Positions 11,456-33,031 of a stretch of DNA of 64,000 bases are shown here, piece by piece. The stretch comes from Rebecca billardiae RCC1528. Taxonomy: Eukaryota; Protista; Haptophyta. Where the stretch lies: the NCBI GenBank assembly GCA_965240325.2, contig OZ251224.1:124001-188000 (forward strand), in the 5' to 3' direction. How positions within the stretch are numbered: the stretch's first letter is position 1; every line of letters begins with the position of its first letter. The position numbers and the translations under genes are program-made. The notes below the pieces were generated by a model. It worked only from the letters and a program-made list of their open reading frames with translations, was not told the DNA's origin and did not search any database.

Positions 11456-14419
11456 TCAGGGCGCGCGCTCGCTCGCGCGCGGCGCGGCGCCGCCGAGGCG
11501 CGCGGGGTGCGCGGGCGAGCCGGGCGGCGGCGAGCCGGCCGACGGCGCGAGCTGCTGCGCGGGCTCGGCGGGCCCGCTGAAGCTGACGCCTCGCTCGTAC
11601 CACTCGAGCGCGTCGTCGTCCTCCGCCGCGTGCTCCGGCCCCTCCTCCCACGGCGCGTCGCGCACCGTCGGCATGTAGGAGCGCACGACCTCGTTGAAGC
11701 GCCACACGGGAGCGAGCTGGATGATGTCCGCCAGCCGGCCAAACCCGCGCATCGAGCGCATGCCGCCCGTGTACATGACGTGGAAGGCGTCGATCTGCGC
11801 GACGATCGTCTCGCGCGAGGCGAGCGGGCAGAGCGGGCGCACGTCCACGTCGGCGAGCGAGCGGCCGAGCGTGCGCCACAGGTAGAGCTCGAACGCGCAC
11901 CACAGCCGGTCGAAGAGCGTGTCTCCCAGCAGCACGAGCAGCCGGCGCGCGCGGCAGAGGTACACGACGGTGTGCGCGAGGCGCGGCGTGGGGTCCCACT
12001 GGATGCCCTCGGCGATCGAGGGGTCCCAGCAGACGACGTCGATCCAGATGCGCGGCGCGCGCCCCGTCGCCGCGCGGTGCTCCGCCGCGTACGCGCGCAG
12101 CGCCGCCACGCGCGCGCGCGGCGCGTCCTCGAACGAGTGGATCACGTGGCAGTCGACGACCTCGCGCTCGGCGGCGGCGGGCGCGTCCGCGCCGCCGGCG
12201 CCGTCCGGGGCGGCGGCGTCGTCGTCGAGGGCGAGCGCGGTGGCGCGCTGCACGCGCAGCTCGTGCGTCGACGCGGGCTCGCGCGGCCCCGCCGCCGCCG
12301 CGCGCGCGCGCTCGCCCAGCCCTCTGGGCGTGCGCCCGCGCGCGAGCGGCGCGTTGGCGAGCATCGCGCGCTCAATGTGGCCGAGCGCGTCCTCGCCCGA
12401 GAGGGTCACGCCGTGGTGCACGCGCAGGGCCTCGTCGACGAGGGTGCGCGGGACGGCGGGCGTGTCCGTGCCGTACCCGATCGCCGCGGCGATCACGAGC
12501 AGCGGGCGCGGCACGCTGTGCAGGTAGCTCCCCATCAGCCCGCGCGCGAGGCCGTCGAGCAGCCCGCCCACGCGCGCCAGCCCGCCCGCGCGCGCGCCCG
12601 ACACCGACGACACGGAGGAGGCGAGCTCGGAGAGCGCAGACGAGAGGCGCGCGGGCACGCGCACCCACGCCCAGCGCGCGCCGGCGGTGCCGAGCGCGGC
12701 GCCGGCGAGCCTCAGCGCCGCGCCGGCGAGCCGCCGCTCGGGCCACCCGCCCGGCGGCTGCGCCAGCCCGCTCAGCGCGAGCAGCGCGCCAAAGCACGCC
12801 GTCTCGGCGAGCGCGCGCGAGCGCGGCCGCGCGTGCGCCGCTCGCACCGCGCGCTCGAGCAGCGCGACAATCTCCGAGCGCGAGCGCACGCCCGCGCCGT
12901 CGAGCGGCTTCGAGTCGTACGCCGAGCGGCGGCCGAGCTCGTTCTTGCCCGAGAGGCGGCCGTAGTACGTCTGCGCGCCCGCCGCGCTCGCCACGCTCGC
13001 CGCGCCCGCCTGCACACTCTCGACGTCGGACACGGAGCGGCGGCGCAGCGCGTGCGACTCAGACTTGCCCGCGGTCGCGAGTACCGCCTGGTGGTAGGTC
13101 TGGCGCAGCAGCAGCGCGACCGTGTCGGCGGGGACGGTAAGCTCGGGCGAGAGCAGGAGCAGGTGGCGCACGCGCCGCCCGCCCGCCGCGCTCGCCGCCA
13201 CGCCCACCCACGCGCCGCCCATCCCTGTGAACGCCTCCGCGGTGCTCGGCAGCACCGTCATCAGCGCGACCACGTCGTACGGCTTCACGTAGCCCTCGAG
13301 GTAGGAGACGATGTCCGCGTCCGCGCCGAGCGCGTCGAGGCCCTCGCGCGCGAAGGTGTCGGCGGTGGCGCCGCAGAACGTCTCGAAGTACCACTGCTTC
13401 GTGCACCGCGCGGGCAGCTCGCCCGCGCACAGCCGGCGCCACAGCCCCTCCAGCCCCAGGAACTGCGCGTCGGCGAGGTAGCGCATCAGCGGGCAGCGCG
13501 TGCGCATCGCGAAGGAGCGCGCGAGCTGCATCGGCAGCAGCGGCACCGCGGCGCGCGAGGTGACGCGCAGCTCGACGCCGTGCGCGAAGCACCACGAGTA
13601 CACCGCCTCCGCCGCGGCCATGTCGAACTGGTTGTTCACCGCCTGCCGCCGCGCGGCGCGAGCGAGCGCGCGGGGCGCGGCGGCGGCGCGAGCGGCGGCG
13701 GCGCGTCGTCCGCGGGTGCGCAGAGGCCGTCAGCGCGCGCGTGCGCGCGCGCGCGGCGCGGCGCGCGCGGCGCGCGGCGCGGCGCGGCGCGCGCACAGAG
13801 TCGGGCCGCCAGCCGCCCTCCCCGTCGCGCTCGAGCCCGCCCTGCACCGCCACGGTCGCCACCTTCTCGCGCACGAGCTCGGGCGCGCTGCCAATCACGT
13901 CCGCAAAGTCGCGCATGGAGGAGATGAGGAGCATGGTGACGGAGCGGCGGTGCGCGGTGCGCAGCGCGTCAAGGAGCAGCGTGTCGCCGGGCACCAGCCG
14001 CGCCGTGTCCACCTCGTCGTACCCCTCGAGCTTGTACTCGTGCGGCTGCGTGGTCGTCGCAGAGCCGCGCGAGCCGACGCCGACCGGGATGTCCTCCGTG
14101 TCGACGAGCTGGAAGGCGGCGAGGGCGAGCTTGGCGCGCGCCTCGGGCTGCCCGCCGCCGTTGGCGATCACGGCGCGCACGCGCACCGTGCCCTGCTTGT
14201 GCAGCACCGCCGCCACCAGCAGCGCCTGCCGGGCGGGGGAAGCGAGCGCGCATCGCCAAGCGCGCGCGGCGTGTGAGGGCAGCGCCGAGCGGCGCGGCGC
14301 GCGCGGCGGCTGACGCGCACCTTGAGATCATCCGGGTCCGGCCCAGGGTCGGTCACGATGATCAGCTCGAGCGGAGGCCGGCCGCGCAGGCGGGCCAGCC
14401 ACTCGGCTGGGCCCCTCAT
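11456..14419 (-). CDS. Nucleoside-hydrolase-fold protein (XopQ/HopQ1-like) fused to a C-terminal TIR/HET-like domain; exons 14419-14321, 14225-13797, 13642-11456
   Basis: IIVTDPGPDPDD Asp motif, VAVQGG, spliced PDSAVNNQFD and KPYD. C-terminal DCHVIHSF..RIWIDVVC..LLVLLG..DRLWCAFELY. GT-AG introns of 95 and 154 nt give one continuous frame. Confidence 0.8.
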
Positions 14420-26063: not shown

Positions 26064-26126
26064 CAGTGGGCGGTCCGCGCGCGGCGCTGGCGCGCCAGAC
26101 GCGCCCGGTTGGGCAGCGCAGGCACC

Positions 26127-26252
26127 CTCAGCGGCCAGGACGACGACTTCCTCAACGGCAAGGGCGACGACTTCCTCTGCGGCCAGGGCGACGACTTCCT
26201 CAACGGCAAGGACGACGACTTCCTCAACGGCAAGGGCGACTACTCCCTCAAC
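26127..26252 (+). repeat. 24-nt tandem repeat, ~5 units (LxGxGDDF when translated)
   Basis: CTCAACGGCAAGGGCGACGACTTC-type units with substitutions. Confidence 0.9.
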
Positions 26253-26513
26253 TCGGCAAGGCCACTAGGCCGCGCACACCGGCCCGGGCGACCACATCCA
26301 CTACCTGCACTACGGCATCAACTTGAACAGCCTCGGACGACGACGACACGGGCAACTACATGATGACCAAGGCCGACGACGACTGCAAAACAGCGGCATC
26401 CCCGGGCGCCTACTACCTCAGTGACCGTGTGATCAGCATCGGTTACGACGACTCCCTCACCCGCGGCCAACGCGCTCCGACATCCTCCATTAACTCCATT
26501 CAGTACTTCGACA

Positions 26514-27171: not shown

Positions 27172-30100
27172 TCAGACAAACATGGGCATCTCGTCGTCGG
27201 AGTCCTCACGCTCGACAACGAGTAGTGCTGGCAAGCTGCTGTCGTGCTGGAGCAGCGTGTTCGCGGCCTCGACGCCGCCCAGTGGCTCGTCATTGATCCC
27301 CGCCGCAGCGCTCGGTGTGGGCTCCGCCTCGGCCGCGGCCGCGCTGCTGTTGCCAGCGCTTGCAGTCGAGGGCTCGGGCACCAGCTCAGCGCCTGCGTCC
27401 GGTGCTGCCAGCAGGCTCCCCTCCGCGTCCAGCGCGGCGCGGCGCTCTCCGTGGCTGATGAGCGGGCTCGGCTCGGACTCGTCCGGGCCGAGGGCGGCGT
27501 CCACGCTGCCGGGCGATGAGCGGCGCATGCGGCCCGGCGTCAGCGTCACTATCTCGTAGACGGTACGAAGCGCGCCCTGGGTCCACTCCTTCGTAGCGGT
27601 GCCCGGGGCCTCAGCCAAGCCGTGGGCGAGGTGCGCACCGCCCTCGGGAGGCGAGTGCACGCGCGGGGCGGCCGAGCGCACGCTCGGGGTCGAGCCCAGC
27701 CGCCAGCTGAGGCCCGCGAGGGCGGCGGAGATGGCGCCGCGCACGACGGCGTTGAACGCCTCGATCGCCGCGGCGGCGTCCTCCAGCCCGCGGCTCTGCC
27801 CGCGCATCCGCAGCTGCGCGGTGCTCAGCCCGCTCGGCGCAAACCTCGAGACGATTGCCTCCATGATGAGTGCGCGGTCCGCCGGCACCGACGCCTGCGC
27901 GCCGCGCATGTCGAAGGAGGTGAGCGCGCTCTCTACGTCCTCGGGCGCGCGGTTGAGCGCGCGCAGCAGCCGCTCGCGCTGCGCGAACGGCATCGCCAGG
28001 TGGAACGAGCCGCCGCCCGCGCCGCTCCGCGCCCTCGGCCCGGCGCGCGCGTCCCCCTTGAACGACTTGCGCCCCGCGCCGGGCGTGCTCAGCCCGCTCA
28101 GCACGAGGTGCGCGTGCATGATCTCGAAGAGGCACCACATGCGCGAGAGCGCCACCGCCGCGTCGTACGGGTCGAGCACGAGCACGACGTGCCGGATGTG
28201 CCGGATCACGCCCGCGATGTGGATCACGTCGGACTCCACGCGGTGCTGCCGGATCGAGAAGATGCTGCGTTGGGCAGGCGGGCAGGCGGCGGTGGCGGCG
28301 CACGCGCGTGGCTGGTGAGCACCGGCGCGCGCGCTCGCTCGCGGCCGACGGCGCGCGCGCGGTGGCGGGGGGCGCGTGCGCGCACTCGATCCACAGGTAC
28401 TGCTTGTCCGGCCTGAGCGCGTGCAGCTGCATGTGCTGCTCCACCGCGTCGATGAGCCCCCTGAACGTGCACGCCTGCGCGTGGCTCACAAAGAGGGTGG
28501 CGCGGTGCACGCCCAGCGTTCCGTCGGCCGTGCGCGCCTTGCGCTCGCGCTCGCACAGCGAGAGATGGCTGTCGGCGGTCAGCTGCGAGACAAGCTTGGA
28601 GACCGAGTAGGTGGGGTCGTCGGGGTCGATGCCGTTGTCGTCGGCGAACTCGCACAGGAACGCGAGCGACACGCCCAGCGTCAGATGCTCGGGCAGCGCG
28701 CCCTCCCAGCTCGAGGGCGGCGCCGAGGCGTGCACGCCATCGCGCGGCGCGCGCTGATGCGAGTCGGGCGGAGGGCACGCTGCGCACTCCGCCAAAGCCG
28801 GCGGATGGCGCAGCGGTGGCAGCCGGTTCGAGCGAGTAGCGGCGCCACCGAGCTCAGACATTGGCGAAGTGCTCTCGCTGCAGATCCTCAGCTCGTGCCT
28901 GGGGCCGCTGTACTTGTGCCTGGCGGGGAAGCGCGCGTGCGCGGGCGAGCCCCAGTCGGCGCTGTGGGGTGCCTGGGCGGCAGCGCTCGCTGCAGACACA
29001 CGCGCGGGCGTCTCCGCGGTGGGGCCGACGGGCTCCGACGGGGTAGGCGGCGGGAGCGCGTCGACGCTGCAGGGCCGTCGCTGCCGCCGAGGAGCGAAGC
29101 CGAGCTCGAGCAGCTTGTGCGCGTGCGACGTCGGGCTGTCCGGTGAGACAGCCGTGATGCGCTCGGACGACTCGCTCGCCCGCGAGGGCTGCAGCGCGCG
29201 CACGCACTTGCACAGGCGCGCAGCGAGGCACGCGTGCACACATTCGAGCGGCCCGCGACGGATCGGCTCGCCGATGGGCTCGCACACGGGCAGCTGCGTG
29301 ATCATCCGCACCGTGTAGAGCAGCGTGAGCGCCACGTGCACCGCCAGCCTGCGCTCGGCGCCGAACACCGACCAGGGCCACAGCGTGCTGACCAGCATGA
29401 TCACGCACGAGAAGCCGACGGAGCGCCACGCGTGCCGGCTCAGAGACGCGCGCACCGAGCAGGGCGTGTACGTGACCTGCTGCAAGCCCGCCGCGCGGAC
29501 GGAGCGCAGCGCCGCCACCGAGAGCGCGAGCACGGCGGCCGGCTCGACCAGCGTGATCAGCGCGACGCGCACAAACACGGCGGGCCCGCGCGCGCGGTTG
29601 CTCGTCTGCAGCAGCGTGCTGATCGCACCCTCGAGCACGAGCAGGCAGCACGTGATGCCCAGCAGCACCCGCGTGCACGCGCCCTTCCTCAGGACGAACG
29701 AGGCGAGCCTCGACCCCCGGCTGCCCTCAAGGAAGTAGACTGCATCGTCAGCCGCGGGCGCGGCAGCGTGCGTGGGAGCGGGAGCGCGCGGGGCGCGTGA
29801 GTTGGGTGCCGCGAGATGGCTCGCGGGCGCTGCACGCAGGCGCAGAGCAGAGCCGCGCGCGCAGCCCCGCCGCCACTACGCGCGCGCACCGCAGAAAGCA
29901 GCCGTCGCGAGCGACGAGAGCGCGCTGCACGGCGCGAAGAGCATCTGCTGCATCTGGAACCACGTGATCTCCCGCGGCACGCGGAGCATCATCGCGCCGA
30001 GCAGCAGCAGCAGCAGGCTGCCCAGCAGCGAGAAGGAGAGGATCATGTGCGGGATGCTGAGCTGACCGCCCGAGTCCACGCGCCAGAACGCGAGCAGCCG

Positions 30101-30739
30101 AGTGAGCGCCATCTCCACGCTCAGCAGATTGGGCAAGATGACCACGAGTGCGAGCCACGACGCGACCGGCGACGAGATGAGCGCCTCCAGTGGGCCGGGG
30201 CCGGGCGCGAGGCGGCCGCTGAGCGCCTCGCCCGCGCGGAGCGACTCGACGAGCGGCAAGGCGGCACTGGAGGTGATGTCCGCGCACGTCACATTCCAAT
30301 GGTGCCCAACATCGCCGATGCTGCGCGCGCCGTACGCGAATCCCGGCTGCGCGTCCATCAGCGAGGCGTATCGCTCGTGGAACGAGACCCAGCCCACGGC
30401 TCCGAGCTGCGCGGCGGCGCGCGCGTGCTGCTCGGCGCTGCACTGCACCGTCCAGGCGTCGACGTGGACGATGATGGCGCCTCGGAAGTGCGCCGTGCCT
30501 CGCATGGCAGCGGCTCGGGTCAGCACGGGTGGGCACCCGTCCCCAGCGGAGTCGTACGCCCAGTCCGCCGCCTCGGTCAGCGCGAGAGGCGCGGCCGGCA
30601 CAGCGCGAGCCGTGGGTGCTGAGCGGCTGGACGTCGCGAAGCGAGCCGCCTCGTACGTCGCGCCGTCGCTCGTCGCGAGCCAGCCCGCGTCACCCGCGAG
30701 CGTGGTCACGCACAGGAGTCCAAGCGTGCCGACGACCAT
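27172..30739 (-). CDS. Receptor-like protein: signal peptide, PA-like ectodomain, 7 TM helices, cytosolic TIR/HET-like domain; exons 30739-29890, 29739-28386, 28264-27172
   Basis: PA-like FRGAIIVH..C..AAAQLGAVGW, seven hydrophobic segments, then GVSLAFL..ATLFVSHA..YLWIDIFSIRQH..VVLVLDP..LSRMWCLFEI. GT-AG introns of 150 and 121 nt restore the frame and the WID motif. An alternative ATG lies at 30871. Confidence 0.8.
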
Positions 30740-32026
30740 GGTCGTTGAGAGCCGTGCTGGCGCGGTGAAGCTCGCGCGTCGCCGGCGAGTTGTGGGAGGT
30801 TGGTCAAACCGCGGTTCACTTTGGTGGTGGATTCGCGCCAAAGATGGATGCTCGTTGGAAAACGCCTCCATGATTAGGACCGCAATTGAAACAAGTTTGT
30901 GTGAAAGGAACCGGAGTTCGTGTGTATCCTACCGCGATCTACTCAGATCCACATCTCCAGATGCCCCCACGTATTCGTGGTATCGCCGTTGCTTCATTAA
31001 TTCAAGCCGGGATACCTAGGTTAATTAATTCAAGCCGGGACCTTGAGGCCCTTGTTATGGAGATGGATGGGGCTTGAACCGCCGCTTGTGTGAGTCGATC
31101 CTCTAGATCTCGGCTCTGGGTACGATGGGGTATTTTTTAGAATTCCCTTTGTATGGGTGGGGTACTACCTGGTTATAGTGTGCCTGAAATCGCCGGACCG
31201 TATGTGAGTATGTGACAGCCATGGCTGCCGCACGCCGACCGCGTACGCACGGTCCGGAGCGCATGTCGGATGGTCAAAGCACGTGCGCCGGCCTCTTGGC
31301 CCGCCCTTCGATGAGCTCGTCGCGTCTCTCCTCACGCTCCAGCCATGCTGCATGCACTAGAGTGCACCGTGCGGGCCGGCTGGCGAGCTGCAGACGCGGT
31401 GGATGCCCGGTTGGCATGTGCGCCTAAGGCTGGGCGCCCAGGCCTTTAGGGCGTACGGGGGTGGACGTGCACACTTGCGTTCAGTCCTTTGAAGCGCGCG
31501 CCGAGGCTGTTTCGGAGGCGTGCACCTACTCGCGGATGTCGGCGGCACTCCGTCACCGAGTGGGCAGCCCGCCGTGGCCACAGAGGCCACGGCGGGCACT
31601 TCATTCGGGCGAGATGTACATGGCCCCATGGCGGCAGGGAACGTTCTGTGTGTACGCTGCGGGTCCCGCCGAGGTCAGTGATACGGGCTTCGCCTGGGTG
31701 TGTGGCTTGAACACACTGCTCGGGGGCCCACGGATCGCCGCGCATGACGCAGGGCGCGGCCGCGGGTTACCAATACCCTCCGGCTCCGCCAGCCCGTTAG
31801 CCTACATAGCTGCGCTAGCAAATAGTAACTAGGCCATTATTATATAAAAATACGTGCGGCACATGCGCAGTGTGTCAAAACTCAAAATATTTTATAATAT
31901 ATATAGACGGAGTTTTATTATTCATCGTCAACGAGAACCCTAGCGCGCTACTCTGGAGCCCTTCCCATATTATAATAATAAAATAATATATATAATTGCT
32001 GAATGGCCAGCGTCCGCAATTGGCCT

Positions 32027-32124: not shown

Positions 32125-33031
32125 TAACCGTAAGTCACCTGGGGACAGTCCCGCGAGGGGCTGTAGTCCGTCCCAGTCTACCGACTACGGATTTGTTGAC
32201 GAGGTTGTTCCTTCCCCGCCCGGTCTGTCCCGGGCGTCCTGCCCTGCGTGCTCGTCTGCGCTGTGTGGCTTCGTAGAGGCTCCGGCTTCTGTGTGTGTGT
32301 GGGCGGTGAGCCCTTCACTGCGGCTGTGGCTTCTTGAGGCTCGTTGTGTCATCGACATCGTTGTTGACCCGGGGGTGACTGTACCCGGGGGCTGCGCTTC
32401 TCGTGGAACCGTGCTCGTCTTCTGTCGGCAAACGGGTTTTCAACCGGTTTGATCTTTGGCACTACGCCAGGTTAACGGCGAGTTTTCGGATGAACCAAGT
32501 GTGCGTGCACGTTAAACTGATGCTGATGATAATAGCAGTATAAACTGAGTAGTCAAGGGCCTTGCTTATTATTGCAGTAGTGATGATAGCACTTATTATT
32601 ATTATATTTATAGCCAGCTCGGCACTGTTTACGAATCCGACGAATAATATCGTGTTACCACAGTGTATAATGCCGAATGCGGCGGCGGAGTTTCATGGCC
32701 GCGCGTAATAGTATTATTCGTCGATCTATATAATCCGATTATTTATTCGAGTCCTCGGGTACGTGAGTATATATATGCATATATATGCATATATATGTAT
32801 AGATCGAGCTTATATATATTAATTAATTAATTAATATAGCAGTCGTGTGACGATTTAGTACAAACTGTAAAAATACTCAGAATATAATAATAGTTATAAT
32901 AATGATCAAACGTAGTATACGTACCCGAGACGTAGTGGCCGCCCGCGCAGCACGGCCGTCCCGACGGCGTGACGGACCGTAGGGAACACCAGCTACAGTA
33001 GGAGTAGGATAGCGCTGCTCCGCAGCAGTCC

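Follow-up and report, generated by a model that had tools for sequence, protein, structure and literature searches.

The stretch of DNA analyzed here (the window) comprises 64,000 nucleotides (nt) of contig OZ251224.1 of the haptophyte Rebecca billardiae RCC1528, positions 124,001 to 188,000 of the forward strand in GenBank assembly GCA_965240325.2. It carries on its minus strand, at 27172-30739, a gene that is, as judged from its sequence, real and intact, with three exons. The predicted protein is composed of a signal peptide, a PA-like ectodomain, seven hydrophobic helices, a disordered, Pro/Ser/Ala-rich linker, a C-terminal domain of ~240-280 amino acids (aa) related to TIR and HET domains, and a low-complexity tail. 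We hold this architecture, PA-like ectodomain, seven transmembrane helices (7TM) and TIR/HET-like domain in one chain, with high confidence. Taken as a whole, the data are best explained, at somewhat better than even probability, by a PA-7TM receptor gene with a ligand-activated TIR/HET-like enzyme output. The protein is best described as a variant combining two known kinds, TIR-type receptors and GPCR-bigrams, i.e., chains in which a G-protein-coupled receptor (GPCR) domain is joined to a signaling domain.

The gene model was obtained by reading the window from 31000 to 27000 and testing all GT and AG sites. Two GT..AG introns separate the exons, and the spliced coding sequence of 3297 nt specifies 1098 aa with 0 internal stops (Table 1). 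The first-pass annotation of this DNA had proposed that three open reading frame (ORF) pieces join through such introns and that the second intron creates a WID motif exactly, and both proposals hold at the level of coordinates, frame, base composition and family profile. For intron 1, a single donor/acceptor pair preserves the frame, and intron 2 splits a codon as GA/C, so that splicing yields the D of W-I-D. The third-position GC content (GC3) is 0.85-1.0 in exons 1-3 and collapses in both introns; GC3 periodicity also showed that the coding phase moves by one past the 121-nt intron 2. The ORF call for this gene in the protein database (P0001) begins at the same Met (30739). An upstream in-frame ATG at 30871 was rejected as the start, given that coding periodicity is absent upstream of ~30760 and that the homologues begin at the signal peptide, which leaves 30739 as the likely start.

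The exon junctions were compared with the homologous proteins. In an alignment with 15 homologues, the end of exon 1 (...ATAAFC) and the start of exon 2 (YFLEGS) matched the family pattern ...FLxYFxxA with no indel. A hidden Markov model (HMM) of the TIR/HET-like domain, built from foreign sequences only with the rows from the window excluded, matched the spliced protein as one domain (E=3e-81; HMM positions 13-246, aa 642-921). Of this span, positions 13-107 were accounted for by the ORF of exon 2 on its own (E=7e-27) and positions 107-246 by that of exon 3 (E=9e-47). As the two halves abut at position 107, intron 2 interrupts a single domain. The view that the model is an artefact, the three pieces being two or three separate genes, is close to refuted. 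Neither exon 2 nor exon 3 has a usable start codon near its 5' end, both junctions restore the family consensus without an indel, and there are collinear full-length homologues, one of them a single ORF. A split into separate genes was the outcome that the first-pass annotation had named as fatal to it, and the collinear homologues and indel-free junctions speak against it.

Both introns open with the octamer GTGCGCGC (donors at 29882-29889 and 28378-28385) and close with GCAG (acceptors at 29740-29743 and 28265-28268). When genes are modeled in this GC-rich genome, this pair may help as a signature of splice sites.

With the part of the domain encoded by exon 3 as the query, an exhaustive HMMER search identified 93 relatives. 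The full layout was found in at least 14 representative proteins (clusters) of other organisms, in which a signal peptide is followed by a first transmembrane helix near residue 190-220, further helices up to ~440 and the WxD...WCxxE domain ~200 residues on. The N-terminal 470 residues of the R. billardiae protein were collinear with the N-termini of full-architecture proteins (phmmer E values from 3e-28 to 2e-13, n=7), and an iterated search raised these collinear matches from 7 to 14. Its TIR/HET-like domain is 34-44% identical to those of full-architecture members. A word-based homologue search returned none for exon 2, only the window's own ORF for exon 1, and 2 proteins for the full-length alignment. 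The homologue designated P0041 is a single uninterrupted ORF of 803 aa, located on an 8.2-kb contig between genes for a glutathione S-transferase (GST) and a fatty-acid desaturase. Two others, P0038 and P0097, correspond to KAG8471001.1 and KAG8471002.1 of Diacronema lutheri, for which UniRef gives the name "Heterokaryon incompatibility domain-containing protein." The linker is poorly conserved, with no consensus in the full-length alignment; the C-terminal tail is not conserved in the homologues, and its GC3 of 0.78-0.9 indicates that it is still coding. A single gene with the order PA-like ectodomain, 7TM, TIR/HET-like domain, as first put forward, is thus conserved in many homologues. Judging by these sequences, it belongs to a conserved receptor-like family that lacks annotation, a predicted receptor-protein type with an expansion in haptophyte-type algae. 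There is no Pfam model for the family, which is conserved across marine protists and has therefore been missed by present annotations.

The two D. lutheri proteins carry adjacent locus tags, KFE25_009422 and KFE25_009423, and are near-identical PA-7TM-HET-like proteins. The family therefore appears to duplicate in tandem in Pavlovales as well.

Hydropathy analysis of the R. billardiae protein delineated seven hydrophobic segments between aa ~192 and 436. Lys and Arg residues number 16 on the predicted cytosolic side versus 6 on the outer loops, a bias that fits an N-out, C-in orientation. The signal peptide, the seven segments and this charge bias together place the C-terminal domain in the cytosol, in agreement with the topology that had been anticipated for a seven-pass protein. 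The fold was addressed with an AlphaFold2 (AF2) model of residues 1-470 of P0041, computed from a 17-row alignment that included the two pieces of the R. billardiae protein. In the model, which has a predicted local distance difference test (pLDDT) score of 89.9, residues 19-188 form a beta/alpha ectodomain, seven long helices occupy residues 191-432, and an eighth helix spans residues 445-464. Residues 187-443 of the model superimposed on class A GPCRs with VIA-align Z scores of 18-20 (root mean square deviation [rmsd] of 3.4-3.9 A over 230-255 residues), which exceeds the caution level of the tool for helical bundles. The 7TM bundle, as modeled, is of GPCR fold, and the initial description of this part as GPCR-like is upheld at the fold level. 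No Pfam 7TM family matched the pieces of the R. billardiae protein or 10 homologues, and the ESM features of the 7TM region pointed to no consistent family. Two candidate identities were rejected, a canonical class A GPCR because of the lack of DRY, NPxxY or CWxP motifs, and a protease of the SPPL2 type, which has a PA domain plus multiple transmembrane segments, because GxGD and PAL motifs were not found.

Four results, weak but concordant, indicate that the ectodomain is PA-like. The ESM features of the R. billardiae ectodomain scored 0.88 to PA clusters, and its ten best family-bearing matches were all PA. The Pfam PA model (PF02225) scored 20.3 bits on the homologue P0038, below its cut-off of 23.9, and gave no match on the R. 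billardiae protein. The best PDB match of the homologue model in Foldseek was a PA-bearing aminopeptidase (E=4.8e-4), with the plant vacuolar sorting receptor (VSR) VSR1 also among the matches. Finally, 8 of 10 Atlas shape rows were PA-bearing, VSR-type clusters among them. The PA domain assigned at first pass is thus a putative one, favored by the concordant ESM, Foldseek and Atlas signals, with a Pfam score that stays below its cut-off. The ectodomain contains a conserved Cys pair, C69 and C100, which fits an oxidizing, outside or luminal location.

As an alternative to a cell-surface sensor, the protein could belong to the endomembrane system, i.e., to the Golgi, vacuole or coccolith-vesicle route, with a luminal PA domain that binds cargo or peptides and a cytosolic domain that acts in trafficking or turnover. 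A PA domain is a typical feature of luminal sorting receptors such as VSR and PA-TM-RING proteins, the structural matches include VSR1 and clusters of VSR type, and the acidic cluster and C-terminal hydrophobic pair of the tail might be taken to resemble sorting signals. However, nothing else indicates trafficking, and TIR/HET-like domains, the class to which the cytosolic module belongs, are linked to immunity and cell death. We consider this alternative quite improbable, and it mainly concerns the place of action rather than the mechanism.

An ESM Atlas cluster of 532 aa, mostly from Endomyxa (Rhizaria), was matched by the PA-7TM model at a TM score of 0.70 over 418 residues. To judge from the length of the cluster, the TIR/HET-like domain is probably lacking, and the PA-7TM module may thus exist alone.

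The C-terminal domain was recognized at first through the motifs FVSHA, WIDIFSIRQH and SRMWCLFE, all of which are present. Thirty-three homologous domains and the pieces from the window align over ~240 columns, with near-invariant residues V and H of FVSH, W and D of WxD, P of DPW, and R, W, C and E of RxWCxxE. All 9 are kept in the R. billardiae protein, V, H, W, D, R, W, C and E in the three motifs and the Pro in LDPYD. The strict conservation of the polar residues H, D, R and E suggests an active site. In the DPW motif the usual Trp is replaced by Tyr, and helix alpha-C is followed by a low-complexity insert of 30 aa. Both would be compatible with a paralogue that, within a large and fast-evolving family, is silent or decaying, intact by sequence and unexpressed or non-functional. 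That explanation has a low probability in our estimation: the frame of 1098 codons is open with GC3 of 0.85-1.0, the splice sites are canonical, all near-invariant residues are kept, and other members have inserts at the same place.

Relationships of the domain to known families were sought with profiles. The only recurring sub-threshold Pfam families, in 9 of 36 members, were HET (6 members, best E value 0.0028), TIR (2) and TIR_2 (1), and one of the family matches was collinear with positions 1-109 of the 122 positions of TIR_2. The best members scored 15.3-15.5 bits with TIR (PF01582) and TIR_2 (PF13676), versus cut-offs of 21.3 and 28, and the highest per-protein score with HET (PF06985) was 17.4 bits versus a cut-off of 22.5, over the WID block only. 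We also built a reference profile from 11 natural TIRs, TcpC of Escherichia coli CFT073 and ten plasmid-borne bacterial or archaeal TIRs. Aligning the family profile with it by hhalign gave P=0.0075 over 75 columns at a probability of only 5%, on account of which the result is supportive, not decisive. In the alignment, FISHA stood opposite FVSHA, WYD opposite WiD and iVvlSP opposite VLVLDPW, and the invariant Glu of TIRs opposite the Glu of the family. TIRs of catalytic type carry a conserved Glu where helix alpha-C starts, and the R. billardiae protein has it as Glu782. Single TIR sequences gave no significant alignment, with E=0.11 for TcpC and E=0.4 for the TIR protein next to it in CFT073, and PADLOC gave one weak, unrelated match only.

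In E. coli CFT073 (L003:37764-40301), tcpC is adjoined by another gene for a TIR domain and by a gene for a macro domain, and the three form a trio with an NAD/ADP-ribose theme.

The structure of the domain was approached through homologues, because the domains of the R. billardiae protein are split by introns. The AF2 model of residues 97-333 of P0004, which is 44% identical to the R. billardiae protein, reached a pLDDT of 94.5 and a predicted template modeling (pTM) score of 0.91. It displays the flavodoxin-like alpha/beta core of the TIR superfamily (betaA-alphaA-betaB...betaC-alphaC), to which a helical extension of ~50 residues is added at the N terminus and further helices at the C terminus. 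The conserved Glu lies at the start of the helix following strand beta-C, the place of the catalytic Glu in TIR NADases. A wide search with VIA-align, a tool independent of Foldseek, was led by the TIR of SARM1 (Z 6.5, 114 residues, 3.8 A), followed by Hydra TRR-2, MyD88 and SpbK, and then by ThsB, MAL and TIR-1, at Z scores of 6.5-5.5 over ~110-118 residues. Plant TIRs also matched, as did nucleoside 2-deoxyribosyltransferases, which are related to TIRs. Fourteen of the top 21 rows were TIR domains (Z 6.5-5.0), spanning model residues 53-237, and further matches included the TIRs of TRIF, TRAM, IL-1RAcP and IL-18R-beta. Despite the moderate Z scores, the list is almost entirely of one superfamily. 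We conclude that the C-terminal domain is, on the evidence of this model, a divergent member of the TIR/HET superfamily. The TIR/HET-like domain of the first-pass annotation is confirmed to that extent: where the lack of a TIR-like fold would have spoken against it, a TIR-like core was found in the homologue model, with the conserved Glu aligned with that of TIRs.

ESM Atlas clusters contain the same 240-aa domain (TM score of 0.83-0.87, rmsd of ~2 A) in oomycetes, haptophytes and chlorophytes. Fusions of the domain in the Atlas are to TPR repeats (oomycetes, haptophytes), H-NOX (haptophytes), a methyltransferase and DUF285. The TIR/HET-like domain behaves as a mobile, widely reused output module without a Pfam model.

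Besides the low hhalign probability, several observations weigh against our reading of the protein. No Pfam model (PA, any 7TM, TIR or HET) reaches its cut-off on the R. billardiae protein, for which Pfam was run on the separate exon pieces with the domain split by an intron, or on its homologues. Searches of PDB chains with a single sequence and with a profile found nothing relevant, and a Foldseek search of the PDB with the C-terminal model returned no row below E=0.3, with TIR domains crowding the weak rows. VIA-align Z scores of ~6 lie within the range that the tool calls common. Both folds, TIR-like and 7TM, were modeled on homologues that are 31-44% identical rather than on the R. billardiae protein, whose splicing is itself a prediction. 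The motifs DRY, NPxxY and CWxP were not found in the 7TM region, which together with the lack of a Pfam 7TM match leaves a GPCR fold without support for G-protein coupling. As to the output, many animal TIRs retain the Glu yet serve as adaptors. The enzymatic activity of HET domains is still to be established, according to a 2023 review (PMC10197012).

How might such a protein work? The PA domain or a pocket of the 7TM bundle would bind a ligand, changing the conformation or clustering of the receptor, and this change would activate the cytosolic TIR/HET-like domain. Once activated, the domain would most likely have enzymatic activity on NAD+ or on a nucleotide related to it, generating a signal or depleting NAD+, possibly in the setting of antiviral defense or regulated cell death. 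Action on NAD+ or a nucleotide is proposed because the invariant residues are polar and located at the position of the TIR active site. We give this enzymatic mechanism slightly less than an even chance. A stronger form of it is tentative, namely that a GPCR-fold receptor directly gates a TIR-type enzyme that cleaves NAD+ or makes a nucleotide signal, and would represent an expanded class of receptors for innate immunity in haptophytes, independent of LRR-type Toll-like receptors and of NLRs. If true, a one-component route would lead from an extracellular ligand, e.g., a viral or bacterial molecule on the PA domain, to NAD-derived signaling or cell death.

The main rival to an enzymatic output keeps the same architecture and regards the domain as a non-enzymatic assembly module. 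It would recruit soluble proteins with the same domain through TIR-TIR or HET-HET oligomers, as do Toll-like receptors, IL-1R and MyD88. Potential partners exist, as most of the non-PA-7TM members among the 93 relatives have no predicted transmembrane helix, and fusions to TPR, H-NOX and other modules occur among them. The best structural matches also include the adaptor TIRs MyD88, MAL, TRIF and TRAM, and adaptor-type signaling has been proposed for HET (PMC4986451). We nevertheless regard this rival as unlikely, as the invariant residues are polar and of catalytic type (H, D, R, E), at the position of the active-site Glu of TIR NADases, and as the matches to SARM1 and to the NADase TIRs of bacteria equal or surpass those to the adaptors.

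The R. billardiae protein can be compared with several known systems. The GPCR-bigrams of oomycetes and other protists comprise GPCR-PIPK, -INPP, -AC, -PDE and -TKL (PMC6033456, PMC5784254). They have in common with the R. billardiae protein an N-terminal seven-helix receptor domain and a C-terminal, putatively catalytic signaling domain in one chain, as well as their occurrence in protists, and how the 7TM part controls the output is a question common to both. In contrast, a TIR/HET-like output is not among the published types, a PA-like ectodomain is added here, and the 7TM part matches no Pfam GPCR family. Toll-like and IL-1 receptors likewise have an ectodomain, a membrane part and a cytosolic TIR-type domain, and the TIRs of MyD88, IL-1RAcP and IL-18R-beta are among the structural matches. 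However, those receptors are single-pass proteins with LRR or Ig ectodomains, whereas the R. billardiae protein is predicted to be seven-pass, with a PA-like ectodomain and extra helices on the domain.

Fungal HET domains (PF06985) resemble the family in three blocks, ALSY/FVSH, WIDxxCIxQ/WIDxFSIRQ and RxWxxQE/RxWCxxE, of which the WID block gave the weak HET matches in 6 of 36 members. All HET matches of the family are below the gathering score, though, and fungal HET domains are soluble or N-terminal in NLRs rather than linked to 7TM. A relation between HET and TIR, and HET-like, TIR-related domains in haptophytes, have been reported (PMC4986451). TIR NADases (SARM1, TcpC, AbTir, ThsB, SpbK and plant TIRs) share the alpha/beta core, and the family aligns with them at the FxSHA strand, the WxD strand and the Glu that opens helix alpha-C. 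They differ in that identity is 10-15%, the Pfam TIR threshold is not reached, the family domain is larger by ~100 residues, and activity is putative here. With PA membrane receptors (plant VSR, PA-TM-RING, SPPL2), the protein shares a signal peptide, a luminal or extracellular PA domain and membrane segments; VSR and PA-TM-RING proteins are single-pass, and SPPL2 has 9 transmembrane segments with YD, GxGD and PAL motifs, the latter two being absent here.

In the haptophyte Gephyrocapsa huxleyi, TIR genes of virus-response clusters, with extracellular regions or multiple N-terminal transmembrane helices, are reported to be induced early in infection by the virus EhV (PMC12489294, 2025). That study reported 15 TIR genes, with TIRs defined by HHsuite matches to six TIR Pfam families, and proposed a receptor-like role. 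The arrangement is similar, with a part that is extracellular or several transmembrane helices and then a TIR domain that has the conserved Glu, but a PA domain, a GPCR-fold 7TM bundle and the HET-like family are not described there. The combination of PA, 7TM and TIR/HET was not described in the literature retrieved by a search for TIR, 7TM and haptophyte. The earlier suggestion of an undescribed receptor class therefore stands as regards the combination and has to be narrowed as regards its parts, as multi-transmembrane TIRs in G. huxleyi, HET-like domains in haptophytes and a homologue named for HET in UniRef were known.

Table 1. Positions in the window of the gene parts and protein regions described in the text.
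Feature	Positions	Strand	Basis or remark
Exon 1	29890..30739	-	ATG at 30739; signal peptide, ectodomain and TM1-TM3; GC3 periodicity
Intron 1	29740..29889	-	150 nt; GTGCGCGC...GCAG; in-frame TAG inside; periodicity lost; junction AAFC/VYFLEG unbroken in the alignment with homologues
Exon 2	28386..29739	-	TM4-TM7, linker and start of TIR/HET-like domain through W-I-(D)
Intron 2	28265..28385	-	121 nt; GTGCGCGC...GCAG; splits the Asp codon of WID
Exon 3	27172..28264	-	Remainder of TIR/HET-like domain and low-complexity tail; TGA stop at 27174-27172
Signal peptide, aa 1-19	30683..30739	-	N-terminal hydrophobic segment; homologues start alike
PA-like ectodomain, aa 20-188	30176..30682	-	Cys pair C69, C100; ESM features; Pfam, Foldseek and Atlas results of homologues
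Seven-helix membrane core, aa 189-440	29270..30175	-	Spans intron 1; hydropathy, positive-inside rule, AF2 model of homologue
Juxtamembrane segment, aa 441-464, and Pro/Ser/Ala-rich linker, aa 465-641	28667..29269	-	Composition
TIR/HET-like cytosolic domain, aa 642-921	27706..28666	-	Spans intron 2; family HMM, model of homologue
Glu782 (GAG codon, in SRMWCLFE)	28123..28125	-	Near-invariant family column E140
Low-complexity C-terminal tail, aa 922-1098	27175..27705	-	Composition; ends in acidic cluster, ...MPMFV

Other features of the window lie around the gene. A neighboring gene on the minus strand (11459-13729), ~13 kb away, encodes a related, far more divergent domain with the motifs IWIDVVCWD ... 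DRLWCAFEL (~11885-12049). The family HMM matched it weakly (E=0.0013, HMM positions 81-158), and Pfam gave no match. Two TIR/HET-like genes are thus located no more than 20 kb apart. A 24-nt tandem repeat (5.6 copies, 86% matches) at 26126-26261, ~900 nt downstream of the stop codon, reads in one frame as a peptide repeat of the GKGDDFLN type. At 32500-33000 there is an AT-rich dip, with a GC content of 0.40 versus ~0.65-0.75 around it, and a (ATATATATGC)n repeat at 32769-32801.

Coccolithophore blooms are ended by giant viruses, and to our knowledge the receptors that detect infection in coccolithophores are not known. In bacteria, plants and animals, innate immunity has its common currency in TIR-type domains. 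A TIR-type domain wired directly to a seven-helix receptor would newly couple surface sensing to NAD-based signaling or death, and it would extend the GPCR-bigram idea by a sixth output type. Through the family, it would also become tractable by experiment to ask if HET-like domains are enzymes and how 7TM domains control a fused output.

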